Source of the DNA: Thalia democratica
Lineage: Eukaryota
Assembly: GCA_965202585.1 (NCBI GenBank)
Contig: OZ241833.1
Location: 39,184,001 to 39,248,000 of the forward strand
Length of the DNA stretch: 64,000 nucleotides
Direction of reading: 5' to 3'
Shown here: one piece after another, positions 3,201-61,944 of the stretch
How the letters are laid out: every line of letters starts with the position of its first letter
Position numbering within the stretch: the first letter of the stretch is position 1
The notes under the pieces: generated by a model
The model's input: only the letters and a program-made list of their open reading frames with translations
Told to the model about the DNA's origin: nothing
Database searches by the model: none
Position numbers and translations under genes: made by a program

Positions 3201-6200
3201 TAAAAAAAGTGTAAAATGTTTTTTTTGTTTTGCATCACATTTTAATAACTTCACACGATTTAATTACTTAAATGTTTCATACAAAATAACTGTAAGTATA
3301 AATTTACACATAGTTAATAGTGAATTTAAGTAAAGATTGATAATTGTTTTAGTTAGCTAATCAACAAATTGGTTTGTTACAGTAAATAAGTTTATAGAAG
3401 AAAAAATTAACTCGAATAATTAAATACCAATAAAAACAAAACTAACTACTGACAAAACTGTTTAAGTTACAAAATAGTTATTAACTATTTTAAGTACTAA
3501 ATAGAAAACAAAATATTGTACTATCAACAGGCTTCTTGAATGAAAATTTAAAATGCAGTCATAATAAAAAATATTGAAGTCACAAATTTTACACAAATAA
3601 TAACGTGACCTTTTCACTTAGAACTTCTCCTTTTAACAGTTTATTTTATTACATAGTTATATGAATGTGCTAGCTACAATTTAAACAAACTAGTAATTCT
3701 TTTTATAAGCAAAAAATATACTTACAACACAAGTTTTAGACTTGCAGTTAACCATTATGAAAAGTTTAAACATTGATATTAACGCGGTTTTTATTTTTTA
3801 ACCGCAAAAAATCAAACTATTAACAAAAAAGCTATTTATAATATATATTTAAAAATATATAATATGCATTTAATTAATGGGACTAAAACATTCAAAGATA
3901 CTTTAATCTTTTATTTATATTTTTTAGTAGAAAAAAATGAATGTTCATATATGTGTATTAGTAAAAGACTCTAAGAAATTAGGCCTTGAAAATAAAAGTT
4001 TATTAGTTAAAGCGGCTATAACTGTTGACAGTAAAAAATCAAAGCTAATTTTTAAGATTAAATATCTACAACCATTATTTATAATATTAAGTTAGTTGTT
4101 TTTTTGTTTCTAGTAATTTGGATTGTTTTACTTATAGCTTAAAAAAAAATTTATAATTATATTTTAAAAAAACACATACAATGTTTAAAAAACAAATAAT
4201 TTTCGATAGGCTTTACAAAACTTTAATAAAAAAAAAGAATTAAAAATGTTACGTCAGTATTAAAACAGTAACACTGAATCAAAAATAAAACTTGCATCAG
4301 CAGTTTTGTACTAAAGTTGTACAGAGACAAAAATAATCTTCTGTGTTAAAATAATGCATGCTTAGCAATTATTAGTTTCTTTATTCTGATTTCAATTTAT
4401 TGTGAAATAAGCATTTTTGTTTAAAATAAGATATTAAAAAATTTTTAAAAATCTCATGCGCTATAAAACTTGATAACAATTATGGCTTTTTTTTTTTTGT
4501 TTAACAACAAAAAAACATTTTCCTAAAAATTTATTAGTTTTTTAGTTTTTAATTTAATTTATGACCTATATAAAATGATTAAAAAGTATTAAAAATAAAT
4601 TTAATTTAAAAACTAAACTTATGCTTTTACTAATTCTATTTGCTTTGAAATGTTTAAAACAAGATGTAATAAACATAAACGTATTTGTAAGCTTATGTTT
4701 AACGCAAGTGAGATAAAACTAATTAGAAATATATAATGATTAAAACTCATTGTTTTATTTAGCTGTTTTTACAATTATAACTACATAGTTTTCACTTTTA
4801 AACAACTTTTTTTTGAAAATTATCTTAAAAAATGTTAAATAGATTTAAAAAATAAGCGCAAAAAAAAAAACTTAAAAAACATTTACCACCTTTTAACAAT
4901 TGTTTTTGTTTACAAAAATACTTTTCCAAGTGTTTTTTATTATTCGTTTTGATCTTTTATGATTAAGAAACTAAATTTTTAAATGCAAAAAATTAAATAA
5001 GTTTAAATATATAACTTGTAATCTTTTATCTAAAGGCACAGTTTATTTTATTGCAAAAGCTTAATTAGTTTGTTAAGATGAGTTATTTTATTGTATACTA
5101 GCTGACTTTTGGCTGTCTACTGTTTTACTTAATCGTAAGACTTAAAAATTTCATATTAAAACAATACACTTCTAAACATGTGACTAGAAAAACTGTCAAT
5201 TGAAATTTTAAGTGCTTACAAAAACAAATTAAAGTTGTGTGCCATAAAAAATGCAAACTGAAATTGGCTAACGAATTTTCTGCAACAATTCTTTTTATGA
5301 GCTTCAATAAAAGTCTGATAATCGTTAAAAACCTTATACGTTTATTTTTTAAGACTTGAAACAGAAGACAACTTAAAAGATATTATAATTATTTTATTGA
5401 TTTTATATATTTTACTTATTATCTATCACACTAATTTGTACCTATCGTTGTACTTTAAACTTTTGAAATCAAGCGAATAGTAAGAGTAAAACGTATGTAG
5501 TTACAATTAAGTATGTGTCTAATAATTAAACTATAACAAGTTAAATACCTTTCAATGTTTAAAGTTAGAAAGTAGAATAAGAAATAAACTCTTTATTAAA
5601 GTTAAAGTTCGTTGCAAAACTTCTGCCAGATTTTATATTTGATGAGATACATTTACTTTGATATATTCTTATATTAATAAAAAAAATCTTAAGTTTTGAA
5701 AGTTTCTATCTATGAACAAAACAAATATAATAAGGTAACATATTACAACAAATTCGAATTCAAATTGTCACAAAAGTTGCTTACTCAAAGTTTTAAATGA
5801 TACTATCTAATAACTTATTAGATAATAAACCAAGTTTTTGTTTGGATAACAAAGTAACATTTTCTATAGCATTGTTTACTATTGTTTACTATAACTTTTT
5901 TTTTTGTGTTAAAAAGTACATGAAAGCATTTTAAAAGCAAAACAGATACGAAAATTAATATAATTTTACTACAATGCAATAAAGTATTTTTGCAGATTGT
6001 AAAAACTGTTTTTGAAAAGCTTATCAAAACAAATAATTTATATTAAAATTGAAGTATATAAAAAGTTTATTTCATAAAATTGAATAAGTATTTAAAGTAT
6101 ATAAAGCTAACTTAATTAAAATCTGATCAAAGTTAATGTAATTTATCAATAAAATGTTTTGTGTTTCTGAGATCGTCTATAGCAGTATGTAAATTAAAGC

Positions 6201-8678: not shown

Positions 8679-9614
8679 TACTGATGTACCGGACTCACTA
8701 TCCGGGTCCGGATCCGGCCGGATATTGCCATTTTTGTCTGATATCCGGATCCGGCCAGATCTTGATATGAAAAAAATGTCCGGATACGGTTCCGGCCAGA
8801 TCCTAATTTGAAAAAAAAGTCCGGTTCCGGCCGGATTCTAACAGAGATCCGGCCGAATCGGATCTAGTTAGTAAAAAAAAGCATACGGAAAATAATTTTT
8901 TTAAAACAAACCCTTTGTAAATTAAAAAGAGTCATATTCGTCAGTTAAAATTAAACACCTACCGTGATTGGCTCATTTTGAACACGTGACTAATTTACAT
9001 TTGTTTACATTTAAACTATGAAATAAACATTTTAGAAATGCAACTCTTTACTTATGTTGTAAAATTAAAAACTTTACTACCAAATTGTTAGGCTAGTTTT
9101 AAGATTTTTTAAAAACTCAGGATAGTTTTCTTTTAGATTTTGAATGAGTTTGAGCTGATCCAGTTTTCAATATTTTGTGATTTTCTAGTTAATTTTGTTC
9201 AAGAACTTGATTTTAATTGATTTTAGATTGGTAAGGCTATAGGGGGGGTCCTCCTTGATTTTTACAGGTTGACCTTATTTAATAGATTTTAATCTTAGCT
9301 ACCAGATATTGTTTCTGTGATGTACTTTATCTTTCTATCAATTTTCCTTATACTAAATCTAAAGTTATTCATAGTTTTTTTATATCACAAAAGCTTTTAT
9401 AGAAATGAAATTTTGAAACTAAAAATGTAAGCTCTACTTTTTATGTGAGAACTAGTGATGTACCGGACTCAATATCCGGATCCGGCCAGATATTGCCATT
9501 TTTGTCTGATATCCGGATCTGGCCGGATTTTGATATGAAAAAAAAAGTCTGGATCCGGTTCCGACCGGATTCTGATTTGAAAAAAAATCCGGATCCAGGT
9601 CCGGTACATCACTA
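8679..9614. mobile_element. Composite non-autonomous hAT-like element (two left ends, one right end)
   Basis: Left TIR TACTGATGTACCGGAC at 8679, a second left TIR TAGTGATGTACCGGAC at 9453, right TIR GTCCGGTACATCACTA ending at 9614. Subterminal ATCCGG/GATCCGG repeats are shared by 8679-8865 and 9453-9614. The 8-bp flanks GACAATAT/ATCAATAT (6/8) surround the outer pair only. Confidence 0.75.
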
Positions 9615-10898
9615 ATCAATATAGAGTAGCATTTTTTACATTACTAGTGTTTTTAAATTAAAATATAATTCATAAGTATAAATAAAGTCTGTAGCAATAA
9701 AACACTAAGTTTCGTCACCAAAAAAATTGTTTTCAATTAACAACTGACAAAAAAAAAGTAGAATTGTTTACCTACATTGTTACTTCTAGTTGTATTATAA
9801 AAGAACAAATTTATTTCACTAAGAACAAATAATGCATTAAAAAAGTAGCTAACTTGAAATGCTTATTTTCAATTACGGCTGTTAGAGAATTGTTTATCCA
9901 ATGTTTCTAGATAGTTAAAATAGATTTTTTAAAGTGGATTCATTTCACGCATATTTATAATTATAAAAACTCTTTAATAAATTTACAGACGTTTTATTTT
10001 TTTGGGAATTTTTTTATTTTTTATATAAAAATTTGAGTTTCAGAGCGATCCAAGGAGCCCATTTTTTAAAACTAATTTTTGTTTTATTTTTATACGGGGT
10101 TTCATTAAAAAACGTTTTTTCTGCATGTTTTACTAATTCTTATAAGTTAAAATCAAAATTTATACTTTTTTTTGCCTTGATTACTTTAAGTTTTTTCTTA
10201 AAAAGTCGGAAAAGGATAGGTACTCAAGTTTTACACTTTTGTAGGGCGTAATAAATGTAATAATAAATTTAGGTTTTTGATTTTAATTTAAATAAATTAA
10301 TACTATTATGTATTTCTTTTCAAGCTTTTTTTTTTTATGAAAGACTAGATTTTTGCTTTATAGAAATATAAAGACATGTATTGCACTGTTGCTAGAAATA
10401 ATTTGACTTTTTTTTAGGATGTGTTTGTTTATGTTTTAAAAATATTTTCCTAAATCATAATAAAGTCGGAAAAAAGGTAAATATAAAAGAATTTAGATAG
10501 ATTTTGCGATTCTTCAGAGTCTTTTTCCAAAATGAAATTATTTTATTAAAATTTACAAAACACTTTTTTAATACTGAACGTAAATTTATTTTAATGATGC
10601 CTTTAATCATTTTAAAAATTATTTTAGTTCTAAACGGCTTAAGTCACTAAAAAATTAAAGTTAAAATGTTACTAACTAATTGTCTTGAACAAGAAAATTT
10701 CATATAATAAAATATTTCAGTTCACCGAAACTTTTCAATTAGTTTTTACTCACAATAGCTTAAAGTGTCATAATTATTGTTATAATTTGTATCTCTTGTA
10801 ACGTATAGTGTTAAATGTTTGAGATACTTATAACTTTGAACTTAATTGCCCATAGTTGTTTAAGACCTATTATATGGCATATATAAAGAAAATTTTAA

Positions 10899-51909: not shown

Positions 51910-52705
51910 TATACAATTTAATAGCTAAACAACAGAGCCATAAAAACTTTTTTTGAGTTAAATGGGTTGTTGCTAGAGCCCACAATAAAAATTGGAAAAA
52001 TTTGGTTTTATTTATTTCGCGGAACATACGTCAAAAATTATATATATTTTTAAGTTATTTTCATTGATATGTTTCAGTAAACTAACTTTTTTCCTCAGTG
52101 TCTTGTTTTTTATATAAACTTAATATTTTTTGAGATATAGGGTACTTTTGTTTTATCAGTTAAGTCTTTAATTGTGGTCCCCTACTTTAAGTTTTTATAG
52201 GAAATCTAATTTCACTGACGAATGAAAATATTTTGTTAAACATTAATGTAAAAAACATTAATGAAAAAACATTAATGAAAAAAAAACAAAAGGTTTTATA
52301 ACTATTTTTTGGTTTTTGCAACATGTTTTTATAAAAAGAAATAAATAAAAATTTTATTGTACTTTGATATTTTAGAAAAAATCTTTATTTTTCAGTGAAT
52401 TTTAATATTTTTAAAAATCTTTAAAAGACCATAATTATAGACCAAAACTAAAACTAAGAATGTACCTTATGTCTCGAAATTATATTAAAAAATAGACACT
52501 AAATAATTATGTTCATACATCTGACATACTTTATGACAAAAAATAACTTAAAAACATGTGTATGGTTTGATGTATTTTCAAATAAATAAAAAAGCCAAAA
52601 TGACCTACTTTTTCTATGGGCTCTAGAGCATTATCTTAAATAAGATTAACTCAAAAAGTTCATATTTTATTTTAACTTTATCACTTAGCTAAAAAATTGT
52701 TTCTT
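51910..52705. mobile_element. Long-arm palindromic MITE-like element (CTAGAGCCCA family), copy 1
   Basis: Roughly 300-bp arms are diverged reverse complements (CTAGAGCCCA/TGGGCTCTAG, AGTGTC/GACACT, GGTAC/GTACC); ends approximate. Confidence 0.65.
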
Positions 52706-52997
52706 ATTATACTTGAAAATTTTTAAAATCAAAGATTAAGAAAATTATAATGTTTTAAAATTTTTGTTTCAAGAAAAATAACTTAATTTTCCCCATATTT
52801 TTAAATGACTGTCAGTATCATTAAACTACACTTAACATAACAATACACTCTTAAATTTTCTATGTTGATCAAGGCAAAATTTTCATCCACAAATTTAAAA
52901 ACTTCACTAGGTTTCTTTTTTTTTTTGAATTTGGGTCAAATGTGTTGGTACTAGAGCCCACGAAAAAAGTGACCATGTTTGCTCCTTTTATTGCTAG

Positions 52998-54011
52998 TAT
53001 TGTATACCATATTTATCTAAACGTAATTTAAAGATGATATTATTATATCTCTATCTTTATCGGATATAAATAGGTATAGCAACTTAATTTAGTTATAAAA
53101 TAAACAACAAAAACTATGTACAATTTATTACTTTTACATACGAACGATTCAAAATGGTGCGCGACGCTTAAGTTTTCTACACATTAATCTTATACGAACT
53201 TCAATATCGATAAAAGTGGAAAATACAATATTTATGAACGTAGAAATCCTATCAAAATTGTTTCATATCGTACCACAGCTTACGTCTTCGGCCTCGAAGT
53301 CTCACGTAAGCTGTTTTATATCGTTCTCTAGTTAACCTCTGCGGCCGCGCAGTCCCAAGCCAACTATTTTGTATCGTACTGCCATTCACGTCTCCGGCCT
53401 CAAAGTCTCACGTGAAAAGTTGCAACTACTTCCACGAAGGAAGAGTCGCCCCGTTGAAGCGGCCTAGGTCCGTTCCGTAGGGTAGTTGAGGTTTAGTAAC
53501 CTAATTTGTAGATGTGCTTCATCGTTTATATACATTTTTACTCTCTCTTTTGCAGGTGGCTTGACATGTTGCAGGTGTCTTGACTTGTTAACAGTTGCAG
53601 GTGGCTTGACATGTTGACAATTGCAGGTGTCTCGTTGCATGTTGGAAGCTGCAAGTGTTTCGGCATGTTGGTATATGCATGTTGGAATCTGCAGGTGTCT
53701 CGGCATGTTGGAATATGCATGTTGGAATTTGCAGGTGTCTCGGCACGGTTTTAATAGCCAGCTTACATACTCACCTGGTTTTGAAAACGGCAATTAATGA
53801 ATACAAAATTGTATTTATTTTGCCTTTGTCAATCAAAAAATATCGAGTAGAGTTTAAAATATAAATTAGAGAACTGTTGTTATTATTTATTTGAAACTTG
53901 TCTTTTTATAAAAAACTTTAATTTAAAAAGTTTTAAATTTTATTCTAATGCATGCATCGACATATGGACAATTGAAGTGAAATAAGTATAATTTCACATA
54001 AATGTCCAACA
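52998..54011 (-). repeat. Complete 3' LTR (LTR-B, 1014 bp)
   Basis: Begins TGTTGGACAT at 54011 like the element 5' end at 60379; ends GGTATACAATA at 52998, and this end recurs (35/36) at 55581-55616; AATAAA at ~53125; weak purine-rich PPT-like ATAGAATAGAG just upstream. Confidence 0.75.
53551..53746. repeat. Modular minisatellite inside LTR-B (19-bp TGCAGGTGTCTCGGCATGT module plus 7-bp modules)
   Basis: Six CAGGTG, one CAAGTG and seven CATGTT counted directly; it accounts for the overlapping ORFs at 53464-53864. Confidence 0.88.
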
Positions 54012-55562
54012 TCGACTCTATTCTATAAAATAAATTTTTTTTTTTAATTTGCCAAGAAAAAGAAATAAAAATTTACACGTTGTAATAGAGTTTTGTTGCC
54101 ATTGACAATTAAATAATAAAAACACCAAAATAACTTCAAACTCCAAAATCTTATTTTTGTCTGCAATATTTACAAGCAATCACTAAAAAAACCAAAAACG
54201 AGAACCATTGATACAATTATCTAGGACTAAAAACGCTAAGGCATTGACGCAAAAAATAACATACATTTTGTTTAAACAAACCACATAGTATTTTTTATCT
54301 TATTGTAAACAACTTGTTATTTAAGTGTTGATACAATAGGCTTATGAACTTGAAATTGTGAAATTAGTTTTTATTTTGAAACATTTACTCTTAAAATACT
54401 TAACTCATGCAGTAAAAATTAAAAACTAACAATTTAATTTGTAAATTCTATAAATATACTTAAGTCATATAAAATGTCTAAAGCAAAATAAAGAATAAAT
54501 ATTTTTACAAGGATATTTCTATAGTTGAGAGAACTTTGTATCATATGCAAATTTTAACTATATACAACAAACGGTTTTTTTTAAGTTTTTTATGTTTAAA
54601 CAATATTTACACAAATATACACATATAAAGATATATAGTTTTAAAAGTTATCTACAAAGTTTAAACTTTGCTTTGTCTTACTGTAGATGTTAATGTTTGA
54701 CTTTGGTTGATTTGCAGACTATTAATAAATGACTTGGTCGACTTCATTTTATAAGTGCTTTTACTTCTGTTCAAGATATATAGCTGTCATAGATTATTTA
54801 ATGAAGTGGTTGAACAACAATCGCTTTTCTTCACATACATATATTGTTTTGTTGCTAAATCGAGTTTCTACCTTCCGGGTGGAATAAGTACGCATACATA
54901 AGCACTCTTTTTAACTGTTTTATTTCTAGTACTGGAACACTTAAATCAAGAGTGATTTTCTTTGCTGCAAATTAAATGCCTTTATGTCTGTGCGGCTGAT
55001 AAAAAGCGATTATATTTTTACGACAAAAACAAGTGCAATGGGAGTTAAAAGTGCTTTCTTTGCGGCTTACATGCGCTCATTGACGGCTTATATGCGATTA
55101 GCGACTTTTTAATAATAAAAGCTTTGCGTTAAAATTTTGTACACATTTAGCACAAATTATAGAAATATAGATGACAAAAAAAAACTGCACATACATTAGG
55201 AAATAAAGCAATTCTTTATTTTTTTTTTGCTAGCAATTAAACCACTCGAGAAATAAACACTATCATTTTAATAAAACTCAGTAGACTGTTACCACACGCT
55301 TTTACCTTTAATTTTACACTCACTGTCACAAAACCGGTGATTTACACTACCATCCTTACTAAAATCAAAAAAGCGATCATCACAAACTATAATTAAGTTC
55401 AGTTTTACACGTAGAAAAGCATTGAAGAAATTATTCCGAGTTGTAAGTCTAAAAGATAAATAAATTCTTAAAAAATAACTTAGTAAAATAAATTATTTTC
55501 TGATCGGTTTTAATTAAATCGTTACTTATGTTTGCCTTGTCTTCGAAAGGTTAGTTTTAAGA

Positions 55563-55616
55563 GCTGTTAGAGGACGCCAATATTGTATACCATATTTATT
55601 TAAACGTAATTTAAAG
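55563..55616 (-). other. Isolated 36-bp LTR-B 3' end followed by a PBS-like TGGCGTCC
   Basis: 55581-55616 matches 52998-53033 at 35/36; it is followed on the minus strand by T-TGGCGTCCTC (TGG-initiated, typical PBS position; cognate tRNA not established). Confidence 0.65.
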
Positions 55617-58600
55617 GGATAAGTTGTTCAGTTTCTGATTCATTTTGTAGGTCTAGTTCTTCGTCCGAATCGCGGTGTTCTAAGTATTGGACCATTTTAT
55701 TGTTCGTTACGACGTTTTTACAATTGTCATCGTATTCTTGAGTTTCTTCGTTGAAAGCAACAAGTATTGGGCGACTTAATAAATCAGCTGTTTTGTTTTG
55801 ATCGCCTGGAATATACTCCATTTTTGGAGCATATTCTTTAATAATGGCTATGTACTTTTCTTCTTTTGGAGAGTGATCTCCGGTAGCGTTGTTAATAGCA
55901 TCTACCAAGGCTCGGTGGTCTGTTTTTACTCGAAGTTGCCTTCCAATAATTCTAATTTTAAAATGCTTTATACTAAGGTATAAAGCTGTCAGTTCACGGA
56001 AAAATACCGATCTTACTGATTGAAGTACTGGTAATTTTTTTGAAAAGAATGCAAGAGGTTTAAGATTTCCTAGTTCGTCCTCTTGTTCAAGCACTGCCCC
56101 AATATGCGTAGAAGAGGCGTCTGTAGAAAGAATCAGCTCTTTTTTTGGATTTTCTTAGGAGAGATGAGTAGCTGAGACAAGGGTTTGAATTGCTTTTTCA
56201 AAAGCTTCTTGATGTTCTGTCTTCCATTTTAATCGTTTTCTTGAATTTTTCGGTTCTCCTTTGGTAAGTTCATATAACGGTTGAATTTTCTCGGCCAAAT
56301 TCGAAGCAAATTTATTGTAGTAGTTTAAACAACCAAGGAAAGATCGCAATTGTTTTATTGTTTGTGGTGGTTGAAAGTTTTCGATTGCCTTAACTTTACT
56401 TTTCTGCATAAAAAAACCTTTGCTGCTCAACATGTGTCCTAGATATTGAACTTCTTCAGCTGCGAATTTGCACTTTTCGCGGTTGATACGTAGGCCAAAT
56501 TCGTTTAACCTAAACAACACTGTAAACAAATGTTTCATATGTTCTTCAACTGTTTTTGAGTAGATTAAAATGTCGTCTATATATGTGAAACTAAATTCAT
56601 GGCACGGGGCCATTATATCGTCCATAAGTCTTTGAAAGGCCATAGGGGCATTCTTAAGGCCAAATGTTCTTAATGGCAGAAACGTGCCATATTGCGAAAT
56701 CATGGCCGCTACTTTTTTTGCCCGGTCGGTCAAAGGGAGGTTGAGATATGCCTCTTTCAGGTCGAGTGTGGAAAATACTTTTGAGTCGATTGGAATAATG
56801 GCCGAAAGGTCATCGATATTTGGCAGAGGATAGCTCAATATCTTGGTGTATTGGTTGATATGTTGGTAGTCTACACATACTCTTGGTTCCCCGTTCTTTT
56901 TTCTAACCACGGTTAGTGGGGATACTATGTCGGAGTTGCCTCTTATGACTGCTCCTTGTTTAAGTAGTTTGTTAAAATTGTTTTCAATCTCTTTAGAAAC
57001 AACATTGTTTGTTTTTCTAGCTTTTTGATGTCGTGGTAAAAATCCTTTTTCAAGGTCTATGTCTAGTTCGTGGTTGTGTTTAGGTTTTTCGTTGTAGTTT
57101 GGTTCTTTCTCAATTTCGGGAAATAATGTCAGAAGTTTTTCTATATCATCTAATGTTTTTGATTTACGTGGCAGATTTGTTAAATGTTTTAATTTAAGTT
57201 TAATTCCAGTTTTTGTCTGCGCGATGATTTTTTCTTGAGGTATAATTGTCAAGTTGCGATTTATAATGAAATCTAACCCGAGAATTGCAAACGGGTTGTT
57301 TGAGTCAATTACGTAGAAAAAATGAGGTGAATCTGGTTTTAAGCCAATGTTAACATTTAACATTACGTGGCCTAGCACTTTCGTTTTGTTTCCATTTATT
57401 TCAGAGATGAAAGGTGCTGATTTATCTTCTTTATATGAGTTAACCATATTTTTTGATATTATAGAGACTTCTGCACCAGTATCAAATAAATATGGTATAT
57501 TCGTATGATTGTCCGTTAAGACTAAGAGTTCTGTTTTGCTGTTTGGTTTTGTTTCGTATAAGACTTTATTATCAAGAAATTTGTCTAATACTATTTTTGG
57601 TTCTTGTATATTTTGTGTATCGTTTTGATCAATAGTAGCACATGATTCTTCTAATTCTTTTGTGCTATTTATTGATTTTTCTTCTATTTTATCAATTTTA
57701 TTTACGCCTTCTTCCTGTATTCTTGTCATATTTACTACCGATGATTTTTGTTTAAGATACTCTAATTTATTTTCTAAAAATTTTTGATACATATCACATT
57801 GCGGCCCTTCGCAGTTGTAGGCTTTTTCACCAAAACGCATATGATGGTAACATCTATTAGAGTTTTTATTATTGAACTGGTTTTGATTTTCTCTGTAGTC
57901 TTGTGAGAAATTGCCTTTGCTTTTATAGTTGTTGTTCGTGTTATTTTGTGCAAAGTTCTGTCTAAAGTTTCGGTTTTGTTTTTGATCAAGTGTGTTGTGC
58001 AATTTATTGTTGAAATTATATTGATTGGTGGAATTTTTTGCATTGTAGTTTGTTTTTAATTCAGCCGGGCCTTGTTCAAGAGTCCACATCACTCTTGACT
58101 TGAACTTATGAATAGGTAATTCCAGATCCTTTCTTAGTATTTCCTTTGCCCATTTTGGGCTGTAACTAAGAGTTAGATGTTTATAGAGGTCGTCTTGTGA
58201 ACAAGTAAGACCTTTTGTCACTAGTTGATGGATATCTTTAAATGTTGGGGTACGACTCCAAACGGGAGGTGATTTGTGTATATTAGGTAAACATGGTGTC
58301 ATGCTTAAAATTTCCTGTTTAAAACAAGTGTAACTCGATGGTTTGCCAGCTTTTACATATGAGAGTACGTCATTTATTGGCCAAATTCCAATAATGATTT
58401 CAAATTGCGCATGGTCGTCAAAAATTCCTTGACTTTTACATTGGATCTCAAAAAGATCGAACTCAGCCATGGGCCTTTCGCCTGTTATTTTTCTAAACGC
58501 TCGTTCTTGAAATTTGTTTGATAGTCTTGAATTTGTTGGTTGATGGAAGGTACGATGATCAGTCGGAAGACTTTGGTTGTCAATGTGGTTGCCGTTGGGT

Positions 58601-59345
58601 AGATATTTGTTGTTTTTATTATAAGTTTGGTCTAGCTTTTTTTGTAAAATGTTCATTTCTCTTTGTAAACTTTTTATTGTAGTACCATCTTCACAGTCTA
58701 CGTCTATGCTTTGGTCACTTGACTGTGTGTGATTTGCAAGGCGAATTGGGTTTTTTTAATAGAACAGGATTTTGCTACAGAATTAGATGAAAGAGTATTT
58801 GAGTGTATTAGCGGGGCAGGGAGTGCGGACATTGTTTCACTTGTCGTTGGGGGAATAGTGTGTAATCTTCTCGTGTTTGGGTAACCTTGAAGGTTGTCGC
58901 CGAACATCGCTTCATCTGTTGTAGCTGAATGTGATCTTCTAGGATCTGTTGAATTTATTTGTGAGTTATAATTACAAATTGTGCTTACCTCGGCTCTTGC
59001 AGGGGGGTTGAGTGATTGATTATTCTGTAAAGAAATTGCATTTATAATAGTATTAAATTTATTTTCTACTAATTTAGTTAACTCATTTATTCTTTTTGTA
59101 TTGTCTTCGATGGTTGGTTTGCTGTTCTTCACCGGGACGCCATTAATGCTCCCGGTGTTACCGGCGTCCCCAGATTCCTCTGAAGCCAACCCTGTAACAG
59201 GTTCAGCAGCCTCAACAGGAGCTAGATTCGCGGTAGTTCCGGGGCATTCTTCTGAAGTATTCTCGGTTTGCGATAGTACTTCGGTCCTGGATCGCGTTCT
59301 TGGGGGTTTAAGAACCTTTTTTAAGGTTTTTTCAATAGAGGACAT
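55600..59345 (-). pseudogene. gag-protease-RT-RNase H polyprotein with one frameshift and one in-frame stop; no integrase
   Basis: Gag knuckle RCYHHMRFGEKAYNCEGPQC; protease YLFDTGAEVSII; RT SPLTVVRKKNG..RVCVDY, LDLKEAY, FGLKNAP, YIDD; RNase H TDAS, RELTAL, TDHRAL, ADLLSR. TAA at 56155-56157 is in frame on both sides; -1 offset at the A7 run (58751-58757). Confidence 0.92.
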
Positions 59346-59984
59346 TTAATTAGATTAGATACAATGAGTTTTTTATAGTTTCAGTTTATTATTTACAATA
59401 AAAAATACAAAAAAACAAGTAACACACAAATAACTGCAAAGTTCAGTTAAATTAGGAAAATGAGCAGAAATATGCTTTCTGCTCTGTTTCACTGCGGTGT
59501 GACGAGTGGTTGTTTTGCTCAGACTCCGTTGATGGTTTACCTCGAAGGGTCGGGCTGGGCACGTTCTCTTGGTCGTGGTCGTTGAACTGTGATCGTGCGA
59601 TAAGCGAAATAAAATTTTAATTTACACAAGAAATATTTACAAAATAAATGTACACTATTTTGAGTGTTGGGTTGCTGAACAAAGACTTAATCAGAACAAT
59701 ACCACTCGCAATGGTTTCGTTAGGAGTTATCTATCAAATGACTTAGCTATACGCTAAAATTCTAAAGCACGTTACAAACTCAAGTCGAGTTTGACGCCCC
59801 GATATTTATAAGTTACAAAATTAAAGACACGCAAACCTCAATTTGAGCTAAGCGCCTCGTTGTAGTAATTAAATTAGAATCACTCAAAAAAAACGCTTTG
59901 AATGATTAATTTGAAGTGCTTGTGCGGCCACAATCACTGATTGTGACGTAATGAGATAAGATTTGAGATCTTCGATCGACGTTG

Positions 59985-60120
59985 TAATTTCAAAATGGCG
60001 ACTGTCGCTTCGGACTGAAACCGGCGTAGTGGTGCTTCTTGTTAACGTTGAAATCCAAATGATCTGCCTTCTCGTTCGCTCGGCTCTTTTTATACGCTTC
60101 TCTTACATAACATCACCTGG
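59985..60120 (-). promoter_or_regulatory. Pol II promoter of the 5' LTR (LTR-A): TATA box, Inr-like TCATT, YY1-type motif
   Basis: TATAAAAAG at 60094-60086, ATCATT about 30 nt downstream, CGCCATTTTG at ~59999-59990; motif-level evidence only. Confidence 0.55.
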
Positions 60121-61944
60121 TCAAGACATGATTGTATGATGTAACATGCTGATTAAGGCATGAAAACCCGGCGTGATCGGTGGTTGATTCTATATTGTGT
60201 TCAAAACGAAATGCGTCAACTAGCGGTTGTTTAATATTATAATTTAAAGTGGTTTTTATAGGAATGAGTTTTGTTATTTAACAAAACAACGAAATTTTTT
60301 TTAAAAAATAACTTTAAATGAGTTCAATTTTAAGGCAATCGACGTGAAAGTAATAAGACCTTCACGTTGATGTCCAACACTAGTAACGTATGTCAAAAAC
60401 TAAATATATTTATTATTTATTGTTTTTAAATATTCTTCAAAAAATTAAATATATTCCTTAGTGTCTTTGGTTTTTATATCAACATAATTTTTTTAAGAAA
60501 TAGGTCATTTTTTGTTTTTAAGTTTTGGTTTTTAATTGTGGTCCTACTGCTTAAAGTATAATTTAGAAAATTTAAATTCACTGAGGAATAAAAATATTTT
60601 TGTTAGAAATTTTAAAGTAAAATAAAAAAAATTAATAAAAATAAACCGTCTGTAAGTTGTCTTTAATTATTGTTACATGCTTTTATTAAAATATTTAAGT
60701 AAAAATTTTATCTTAATAATTGTAGCAATAACAATGTAATTATTATTTGAATTTTAATATATTTTTTATTCATTAAGCAACAACACCAAAATTATAGACT
60801 AAAACTGAAAAAAAAGTACCTTGTATCTCAAAATATATTAAAATTATAATAAAAACAAAGACACTAAAGAGTAATACTAATTTATTTGAGATAATTTATG
60901 ATAATAAATGATTTAAAAACATATTAATATTTTGAGAAGCTTTCAAAGGTATAAAAAAATCCAAAATGTCCCTTTTTTTCTATGCCCTTTAAACTATCAA
61001 ATTAACCTAAAATCGAATTCTTCATATTTTATTTTAGTTCTAATTTTTAACTAAAAAACTGCTAAAATATATACAACTTATATAAATGTATTGTAATTTT
61101 TTTTTATACTATATTTATAAAACATTAACTATAATTAACATATATTACAACATTAACAATCAACCGTTAATAACTATACAAGTAAGTAATTAGTTTGTAA
61201 CGTTAAAACATTTCACTTTAAATTAAGTTTATAATGTTTTAAGCGTTATATGTTATCTGCCATCAGGTGCTGTTATCACTGGTTTATTATAATTTAAAGA
61301 AATTGAAGTTCTTCAATCCGGAATATTGTTGTGAATATTACAGATGTTTCAAGTTATTTTCATTATAAAGTTTAACATACTTTATCAAAAATATTGTATA
61401 CTTAATTACTTTAAAACTTTTAAACATTTTATAAACTTTGATACAATTTGTAATGATCCCTTGAAATAGATATTTTGTTGTTGTAGATATATATTTGTAT
61501 TTAGTTATTTAATCGTAAAACATTTGACATAATAACAATTCTACGAGATTTAAAAATACTGTGGCTATCTTACATACAAATGGTATAATTCAAAGTTCTG
61601 ATAAAAATCACTCAAATAATGAAAATAGTATAAATTTTAATACTTTAAAATAACTTGAGGTTTGGCATATTTAGTTATATACCACTCTACAACAAATTAG
61701 TATAAATTAAAACAACTTATCAATTTACTCTTTAGAATTTAGTACTAGTTTTGTGTATAGTGTAAATTTAACTTATTATATTTTTCATCAGTTTTACTTG
61801 TATTCTATATGTTTTAATCAAATTTTTTTAGCTTGACTTCTTTCAAAACTAATTTAGGTTTAATATAGTCAATTGTACGTTCGAAAATTATTAAGAAGAA
61901 CAAAAATTATTTAAACTTATAAGTATTAAAGGTAGCTTATCAAT

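Follow-up and report, generated by a model that had tools for sequence, protein, structure and literature searches.

The stretch of DNA considered here, hereafter the window, comprises 64,000 nt of sequence C9 (C9:39184001-39248000) in the very AT-rich, 801-Mb genome assembly of Thalia democratica. On its minus strand, between two copies of the tetranucleotide CTAG, lies a 7,382-bp unit composed of parts of two families of retrotransposons with long terminal repeats (LTRs), termed A and B, with an LTR of one family at its left end and an LTR of the other at its right. The order of parts is CTAG, LTR-A, a coding region for gag, protease (PR), reverse transcriptase (RT) and RNase H, the end of an LTR-B with a primer-binding site (PBS), 1.57 kb of non-coding DNA, LTR-B, and CTAG. 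GC content is 22-29% around the element and 34-37% within its coding part. When the sequence was re-read, all minus-strand coordinates and the order of parts given in an earlier note on this DNA held. That note had also stated, correctly, that canonical reverse transcription cannot yield two different LTRs: the 5' LTR is copied from plus-strand strong-stop DNA made off the 3' LTR, and even mosaic elements end with identical LTRs (PMC6894440). The unit is a single insertion, and it probably derives from recombinant cDNA of a helper element and its parasite.

The A-derived portion begins immediately inside the upstream CTAG (60380-60383). A complete 5' LTR-A of 1236 nt (TGTTGG...GCATTA, 59144-60379) is 99% identical to both LTRs of a full A copy located elsewhere in the genome. 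Its start at 60379, TGTTGGACAT, is where the earlier note had placed it, whereas the LTR proved longer than had been assumed; its end at 59144 was set by comparison with the full copy and with 14 copies flanked by target-site duplications (TSDs). One spacer A separates this LTR from the PBS of A, TGGCGTCC (59135-59142, then CGG), which lies inside the gag frame, and the ATG of the gag-pol open reading frame (ORF1) is at 59345, inside LTR-A. The A internal region (55611-59134) encodes gag with a CCHC knuckle, protease, RT and RNase H, as recognized both by Pfam (RVT_1, 1.2e-27; RT_RNaseH, 5.5e-19; RVP/gag-asp_proteas) and by identity to the full copy. From LTR nucleotide 1 to 55611 the A part is 99.5% identical to that copy. 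It departs from the full copy at 19 substituted positions, through a gap of 1 nt near 58758 that shifts the frame and one of 3 nt at 56665, and in having a stop codon in frame at 56157-56155. The description of pol as nearly intact must be tempered on account of the frame-shifting gap, the stop and the truncation.

The A portion ends in an 11-nt stretch, TATCCCTTTAA (55611-55621), that A pol (element position ~4763-4773) has in common with the U5 region of LTR-B, where it sits 30 nt before the LTR end. Beyond it lies a B-only remnant of a 5' LTR-B, the final 30 nt of U5 (55581-55610), which matches the LTR-B ends of many copies and within which the pol frame stops (TAA, 55602-55600). The two LTR-B end copies carried by the unit (55616-55581 and 53033-52998) are identical at 35 of 36 positions, exactly as had been reported. 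Next come a spacer T at 55580, the PBS of B, TGGCGTCCTC (55570-55579), and the non-coding B internal region (54012-55569), whose leader of ~65 nt shows homology to the 5' end of gag in A and in a third family, C, and whose polypurine tract (PPT) ends ...GAGTCGA. The longest ORF of this region has 53 aa, and none longer was found in 55580-54012. A complete 3' LTR-B of 1014 nt (TGTTGG...ACAATA, 52998-54011) then abuts the downstream CTAG (52994-52997).

LTR-A and LTR-B can be aligned at their tips only. About 34 of 46 matching positions had been claimed for their starts; the actual figure is 26 of 46 without gaps, or 79% over 48 nt with gaps. Two quoted blocks (60120-60102 and 53778-53762) are present as written, but the "TATA-proximal block" carries no weight, the global alignment of LTR-A and LTR-B scoring just 3.6 standard deviations above shuffled sequences. 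LTR-B contains three 53-nt repeats, together with arrays of 40-, 26- and 19-nt repeats that have a TGCAGGTG core and lie upstream of a TATA-like box (53256-53413 and 53550-53755).

The insertion carries no integrase gene, as had been noted. Pfam detects no integrase in the coding part of the unit, and a tblastn search with the 704 integrase-bearing residues of the intact A copy found none in 52998-55620, which includes the interval 54012-55580 for which a translated search had been suggested, or in the rest of the window; its sole match was a protease paralogue. An integrase acting in trans is required, again in agreement with the earlier note.

The CTAG pair is a genuine TSD, and the whole 7,382 bp is a single insertion. 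The 500-nt flanks of the unit (60380-60880 and 52497-52997) have matches of 91-92% identity, contiguous with one another, at C9:38.757M and C9:38.857M, and the matches of the two flanks overlap there by exactly the 4-mer that is duplicated in the window. Because these empty paralogues (L043 and L044) hold the 4-mer once, as CCAG and CAAG, between abutting and otherwise collinear flanks, both copies of CTAG are accounted for by one integration event. The TSDs of other copies are varied: ACGT, ACTT, GCAG, AAGT, CGTG, CTAG, TAAG, CCCT, GTTA, GTCA, CTAT, CCTT, CCTT and ATAT for A (n=14), ATAG, CTTT and ACAC for B (n=3), and GTTG for C (n=1). CTAG thus recurs in just one of the 18 (the A copy at C7:32.50M), which rules out a preference for CTAG as a target and removes the basis for the shared target site that had been proposed. 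With TSDs so varied, it is not credible that one 4-bp site in an 800-Mb genome was struck twice.

The junction between A and B is found nowhere else. In each genome search the best 40 of ~200 candidates were scored, counts being lower bounds and absences provisional. When 55470-55760 was used as the query against the 801-Mb assembly, A copies matched query positions 1-150 and B copies positions 140-291, with an overlap of 11 nt, and both halves were spanned by the window alone. A recurrent junction, or a family propagating with it, was considered and dropped, the window being the sole spanning match. The probability that a random A/B joint shows an identity of at least 11 nt is 2.5e-5.

As the earlier note had supposed, the two families are an autonomous A and a non-coding B, and intact copies of both exist in the genome. 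Family A is a Ty3/gypsy (Metaviridae) LTR retrotransposon of ~13.27 kb; LTR-A has more than 40 near-identical genomic matches, and several pairs of these are ~12.03 kb apart. The full copy used above for comparison (C8:61965081-61978347; L001+L002) has 1240-nt LTRs that are 99.7% identical to each other, the PBS TGGCGTCC one nucleotide past the LTR, a PPT ending ...AAATCGA, and one gag-pol frame of 1950 aa, the start of which is inside the 5' LTR, 202 nt short of its end. An Integrase_H2C2 domain (2e-19), the zinc finger of the integrase, begins 57 codons beyond the point at which the window copy breaks off, and downstream of it come an rve_3 fragment of the integrase core, another protease-like domain and an env-like ORF. 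Window and intact copy combined give the pol order PR-RT-RNase H-integrase (IN). Perfect 4-bp TSDs flank 14 of 14 A copies or solo LTRs.

Several features of A stand apart from the question of the hybrid insertion. The gag-pol frame begins ~200 nt within the 5' LTR in both A (window 59345-59144) and C (L051:1283-1484), and the PBS is translated as codons in both (I-N-G-V-P in A). Ty1 likewise starts its frame within the LTR. The second retropepsin-like domain of intact A (RVP, 7e-5; L001:8465-10000, minus strand) follows the integrase, at residues ~241-326 past the core, and shares 35% identity, over 99 aa, with the protease of the element itself (window 57519-57223); the resulting layout, PR-RT-RH-IN-PR2 (RH being RNase H), is unusual. 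The env-like ORF of A is at L001:5087-6157 (minus strand). Complements of the PBS, 8 nt long, occur in the U5 of A and in neither B nor C, and Tf1-like self-priming was set aside on that ground. The primer may be tRNA-Asn, a guess of ours based on a 3' end in ...GGGACGCCA.

Family B elements measure 3.6 kb, with LTR pairs ~2.59 kb apart and a TSD of 4 bp. LTR-B has at least 40 genomic matches at 89-97% identity, the B internal region is present in at least 22 full-length copies at 92-97%, and the B part of the window is 95-97% identical to the 3.6-kb copies. The resemblance of B to A and C is confined to patches, namely the LTR start (in A, the first ~10 nt without mismatch and ~48 nt at 79%), the LTR end with the PBS and the ~65-nt leader, which includes an invariant GAAGACAA block that is gag coding sequence in A, and the end of the PPT (...TCGA). 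To judge from this pattern, B is a non-autonomous LTR element, comparable to large retrotransposon derivatives (LARD) or miniature terminal-repeat retrotransposons (TRIM), that retains cis signals only. Because B has cis signals in common with A and C, the same TSD length, and physical A-B and C-B hybrids, we infer that it is mobilized in trans by the proteins of these two families.

Family C is a sister helper family of A. One copy (C5:24592160-24605916) is 13,757 bp long, with 1324-nt LTRs that are 100% identical and the TSD GTTG; across gag-pol it is 73% identical to A. Its PBS, TGGCGTCCTC, consists of the same 10 nt as that of B, and the 8 nt of TGGCGTCC are invariant across A, B, C and two further hybrids described below (L005 and L008). 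About 15 other C pairs were seen, and many C copies are 99-100% identical to the LTR-C of L008, which suggests that the activity of the family is very recent or ongoing. The env-like ORF is intact in C (611 aa; Cel 8771-10603, L051:8931 to L052:763). For the env-like ORFs, weak, sub-threshold Pfam matches to Monjiviricetes_fusion (8e-6) and to herpesvirus Glycoprotein_B (2e-4), both class III fusion proteins, offer a lead only. The start of LTR-B is like that of A (TGTTGGACAT) and not like that of C (TGTAGGACAC), whereas its end is like that of C (GGTA(T)ACAATA, with PBS TGGCGTCCTC) and not like that of A (GCATTA, with TGGCGTCCCG). LTR-B may therefore descend from an exchange of A/C type, or may have become adapted to both helpers.

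The flanks of every B internal region found were inspected for hybrids, and two more with mismatched LTRs came to light. One (L005, C1:32030339-32034135) consists of a complete LTR-A (98.8% identity), a PBS, a B internal region (95%) and LTR-B, with the TSD TAAC. The other (L008, C8:31371735-31375646) has a complete LTR-C, a PBS, a B internal region and LTR-B, with the TSD GTAA; its LTR-C is 99.6% identical to that of a C copy whose own LTRs are 100% identical. A helper 5' LTR is thus combined with a B 3' LTR in 3 of the 22 full-length B internal regions. Because each of the three has a perfect 4-bp TSD of its own, they must have integrated as they are. In L005 the B-side crossover falls inside TGGCGTCC; in L008 it is in the last ~7-11 nt of U5, and in the window copy 30-41 nt before the LTR end. 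All three breakpoints therefore fall in the PBS or at most 41 nt upstream of it, and that 68-nt stretch holds just 1-2% of the 8-11-mers common to A and B. The pattern of a crossover at the PBS, with the 5' LTR from one genome and the 3' LTR from the other, is exact in L005 and near in L008. The window copy also has whole heterologous LTRs, but because its crossover is off the PBS, 30-41 nt upstream of that of B, and is joined to A pol, it needs an additional or different switch.

Hybrids of the reciprocal kinds (LTR-B with an A internal region, or an A internal region with LTR-B) were absent among the best 40 of ~200 candidates in each search. Other candidates were examined and rejected. Four loci that might have been progeny with a chimeric LTR, starting as B and ending as A, because their LTR-A matches seemed unpaired or truncated at the 5' side (C75, C8:14.32M, C5:31.23M and C9:0.67M), are ordinary or truncated LTR-A. 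The candidate at C6:8.40M proved to be an A copy that breaks off at position 2415 and has no B joined to it, and that on C337 runs off its contig. A hybrid-specific PBS variant copied from the tRNA was also considered; the sequence concerned, GGTCGTGC, occurs in ordinary B copies too and is uninformative.

The 7,382-bp unit probably represents one integration of a recombinant cDNA that was formed from co-packaged helper A and parasite B at the stage of plus-strand transfer. Because whole LTRs are heterologous and a TSD flanks the unit, the exchange is placed at or after plus-strand transfer and before integration; a flanking TSD is an accepted criterion for a complex element formed before integration (PMC1950507). 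The proposed course of events would start with an A RNA and a B RNA packaged in one virus-like particle. Late in reverse transcription, at or just after the transfer of plus-strand strong-stop DNA (the second transfer), synthesis would cross between B and A intermediates. A B-derived strand would have been copied through the PBS and 30-41 nt into U5, an extent that would fit a B minus strand that had begun to copy its own strong-stop DNA. At the 11-nt identity, which lies in the linker between RNase H and integrase, it would have switched onto an A plus strand (or A RNA) and continued back across RNase H, RT, PR and gag as far as the end of LTR-A. The product would have its left end from A and its right end from B, each acceptable to helper integrase supplied in trans, and would have been inserted with the 4-bp TSD CTAG, after which the hybrid would have decayed in place. 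The single polarity of the hybrids could be understood if the 3.6-kb B minus strand was finished long before that of the 13-kb helper, so that helper strong-stop DNA would first meet a free PBS of B.

Template switches guided by microsimilarity are documented for LTR-element particles in animals (PMC5131818). In heterozygous retrovirus particles, intermolecular second-strand transfer, which is held to be rare, is predicted to leave a provirus whose two LTRs differ and whose crossover lies at the PBS (Cappy et al. 2017; PMC5651808). That structure, with LTRs from different genomes, is the structure of L005 and L008, and the window copy comes close to it. The evidence from HIV is indirect, consisting of U3/R breakpoints in the next generation, and the transfer is described as "generally intramolecular". 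Here, by contrast, the predicted intermediates would themselves be fixed in a genome, and the window copy needs an extra microhomology-guided switch 30-41 nt into U5.

A similar product could have been assembled from finished DNA. If linear cDNAs of A and B were joined before integration by microhomology-mediated end joining or single-strand annealing and were then inserted by helper integrase, the same structure would be expected (one TSD, A at the left, B at the right, an 11-nt microhomology), and the L005 and L008 junctions do lie in a patch of 8-22-nt homology at the LTR end and PBS that annealing could use. However, breakage and resection should scatter the B-side junctions over the 1-kb LTR and the interior, when all three lie within 41 nt of the PBS and just 1-2% of the common 8-11-mers are located near it. 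Only one polarity is seen, and the joining would require a broken cDNA that nevertheless kept both integrase-competent ends, so we regard this route as unlikely. Conversion after integration, in which the 5' LTR of a plain B element at CTAG was later replaced from an A copy or cDNA by break repair or gene conversion, strikes us as very improbable. The TSD would be kept, and the common LTR start (~10 nt exact, ~48 nt at 79%) might have served as the left anchor, with the right boundary in the 11-nt microhomology. Yet homologous repair normally uses far longer anchors than these of 10 and 11 nt, the site must have gained 4.8 kb while losing ~0.97-0.98 kb, and the same coincidence, a left boundary at exactly LTR nucleotide 1, would have had to occur three times with two donor families.

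The explanation that the earlier note preferred, in which A and B were inserted head to tail at one CTAG and a deletion then removed A from its integrase to its 3' LTR, the shared CTAG and most of the B 5' LTR, has lost nearly all credibility. CTAG is palindromic, one other A copy has it as its TSD, and a deletion through the 11-nt microhomology is plausible in itself; but the TSDs are varied 4-mers of which only that one is CTAG, the empty sites point to one insertion, no A-B dimer was found, and the two other hybrids have the TSDs TAAC and GTAA and junctions exactly at the LTR/PBS border, which deletions would not be expected to produce repeatedly. It is just as hard to believe that copies of A and B were misjoined in the assembly. 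Both are young, high-copy repeats, which would invite such an error, but an overlap of 11 nt is implausible as an assembler joint, the outer flanks are contiguous in two paralogues while a perfect TSD brackets the unit, and two analogous TSD-flanked hybrids occur on other chromosomes. Support for the assembly at the junction is internal only, in the form of the TSD, of empty paralogous sites and of loci with an analogous structure. The second suggestion of the earlier note, a recurrent chimeric or bipartite element that relies on integrase in trans, survives insofar as the process that makes hybrids recurs, but not as a mobile family, to which we assign next to no probability. The hybrid does have a 5' LTR that is intact and bears a promoter, and it also has two PBSs, a PPT and ends competent for integrase. 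Its junction, however, occurs once in 801 Mb, its coding frame is broken, a transcript with the R region of A at its 5' end and that of B at its 3' end would face a first strand transfer without homology, and LTRs that start as B and end as A were absent among the 40 best candidates of each search.

The preferred reading, a recombinant cDNA made during reverse transcription, has points against it as well. A switch at the level of RT is inseparable, by sequence alone, from end joining or single-strand annealing of finished cDNAs. Two of the three junctions lie in the only patch of homology between helper and B, the LTR end and PBS, which any homology-dependent process would favour. A simple minus-strand switch on RNA presupposes that the U5 of B RNA had survived, so that RNase H must have acted incompletely or a third RNA taken part, unless the switch was made on DNA templates. 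One of 36 positions distinguishes the 5' remnant from the 3' LTR-B, the co-packaging of A and B is itself presumed, and the absence of the reciprocal class and of progeny rests on the best 40 candidates per search.

The window copy is an inert by-product with no evident function. It is disabled and a dead end: its LTRs are heterologous, its integrase is missing, its frame is broken, and its junction has no second occurrence in the assembly. The three hybrids together look like first-generation products caught before further replication, and they mark out A and C as probable helpers of B. We advance more tentatively the proposition that, in this Gypsy helper/parasite system, the second transfer or the extension just after it may often cross between co-packaged genomes. 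If so, ~1/7 of the full-length parasite internal regions (3 of 22) would be first-generation proviruses with two unrelated LTRs. Such hybrids would amount to natural, datable fossils of a step regarded in retrovirology as intramolecular in nearly all cases, and to a physical record of which helpers, A and C, package B.

Chimeras of autonomous and non-autonomous elements, and complexes made by template switching, are already known, mainly from plants. RIRE2 and Dasheng of rice, reportedly described by Jiang, Jordan and Wessler in 2002, form an autonomous/non-autonomous LTR pair with chimeras, and Du et al. are said to have described LTR swapping in soybean in 2010. Chimeric TRIM elements occur in sugar beet (PMC13570524). 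The likeness to all three plant systems is that a non-coding element carries just the cis signals of its coding partner and that chimeras are taken as evidence of co-packaging and template switching. The differences are that the host here is an animal, an AT-rich marine invertebrate, that the LTRs are entirely different and accompanied by a perfect TSD, and that two helpers are recorded on one parasite. Less usual in the present case are thus an animal trio of helpers and parasite, TSD-flanked products with wholly different LTRs, their share of about one in seven parasite internal regions, and junctions at the site of the second jump.

The comparison extends to complex elements of other kinds. 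Sabot and Schulman 2007 (PMC1950507) likewise took a TSD to mean that a complex structure was made before integration, in the course of reverse transcription. Their elements, products of abnormal template switching, have three LTRs, with highly similar outer LTRs, and belong to one family, whereas the window copy has two LTRs of different families and a truncated coding region. The recombinants of Devos et al. 2002, formed by unequal crossing-over among separate insertions and described in PMC1950507, differ in lacking matching TSDs, while those of the three hybrids here are perfect and empty paralogues exist for the site in the window. Tan et al. 2016 (PMC5131818) described chimeric cDNA that was made within particles through short identities and integrated with LTRs and a TSD, the median microsimilarity being 6 bp versus 11 here. 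In their case the partner was a host mRNA, two switches took place and the LTRs matched, whereas here the partner is a retroelement and synthesis never returns.

Elements whose two LTRs are unrelated are usually set aside as nested insertions, as products of deletion or as misassemblies, and programs that search for LTR pairs discard them. The three hybrids provide direct genomic evidence for what we take to be the co-packaging of helper and parasite in an animal. They also bear on strand exchange at the PBS, the second-jump stage, for which the retroviral evidence is indirect (PMC5651808). Dating by LTR divergence is invalid for copies with mismatched LTRs, and the annotation of transposable elements in this genome should admit mixed LTR pairs.

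Family B includes other unusual structures. At C4:84844218-84850395 (L004) two B elements stand in tandem (LTR-internal-LTR-internal-LTR) within one TSD, ACAC, and L007 (C2:56.97M) is a partial version; L004 is a complex of the Sabot-Schulman type, made by template switching or unequal exchange. An old B copy on the minus strand at C1:34.19M (L012+L050; TSD ATGA) has a composite 5' LTR in which LTR-B nucleotides 1-53 are followed by a diverged LTR-C-like segment (78-88%) up to ACAATA and then by LTR-B from nucleotide 54. Within this composite there is no internal TSD, only a 4-nt overlap, TGTC, and it looks like another recombinant rather than a nested insertion. Two further copies have deletions in the 5' LTR: in L013 (C1:112.21M) nucleotides 1-308 are joined to the PBS at a CAATA microhomology, and in L010 (C5:17.83M) nucleotides 1-220 are joined ~28 nt before the PBS. 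These endpoints next to the PBS are reminiscent of the deletions that are reported to arise from aberrant second-strand transfer in HIV (PMC12657518).

The insertion site itself belongs to a locally repeated unit of ~1 kb (52146-52700 versus 60510-61061; ~70-77% identity by segment), the two copies of which were ~979 bp apart before the insertion. The unit is segmentally duplicated at 78-92% identity within ~0.8 Mb of the same chromosome (C9:38.756M, 38.857M, 39.015M, 39.147M and 39.520M). Parts of it (query ~250-500) match dozens of dispersed loci, and it probably contains an older short repeat.

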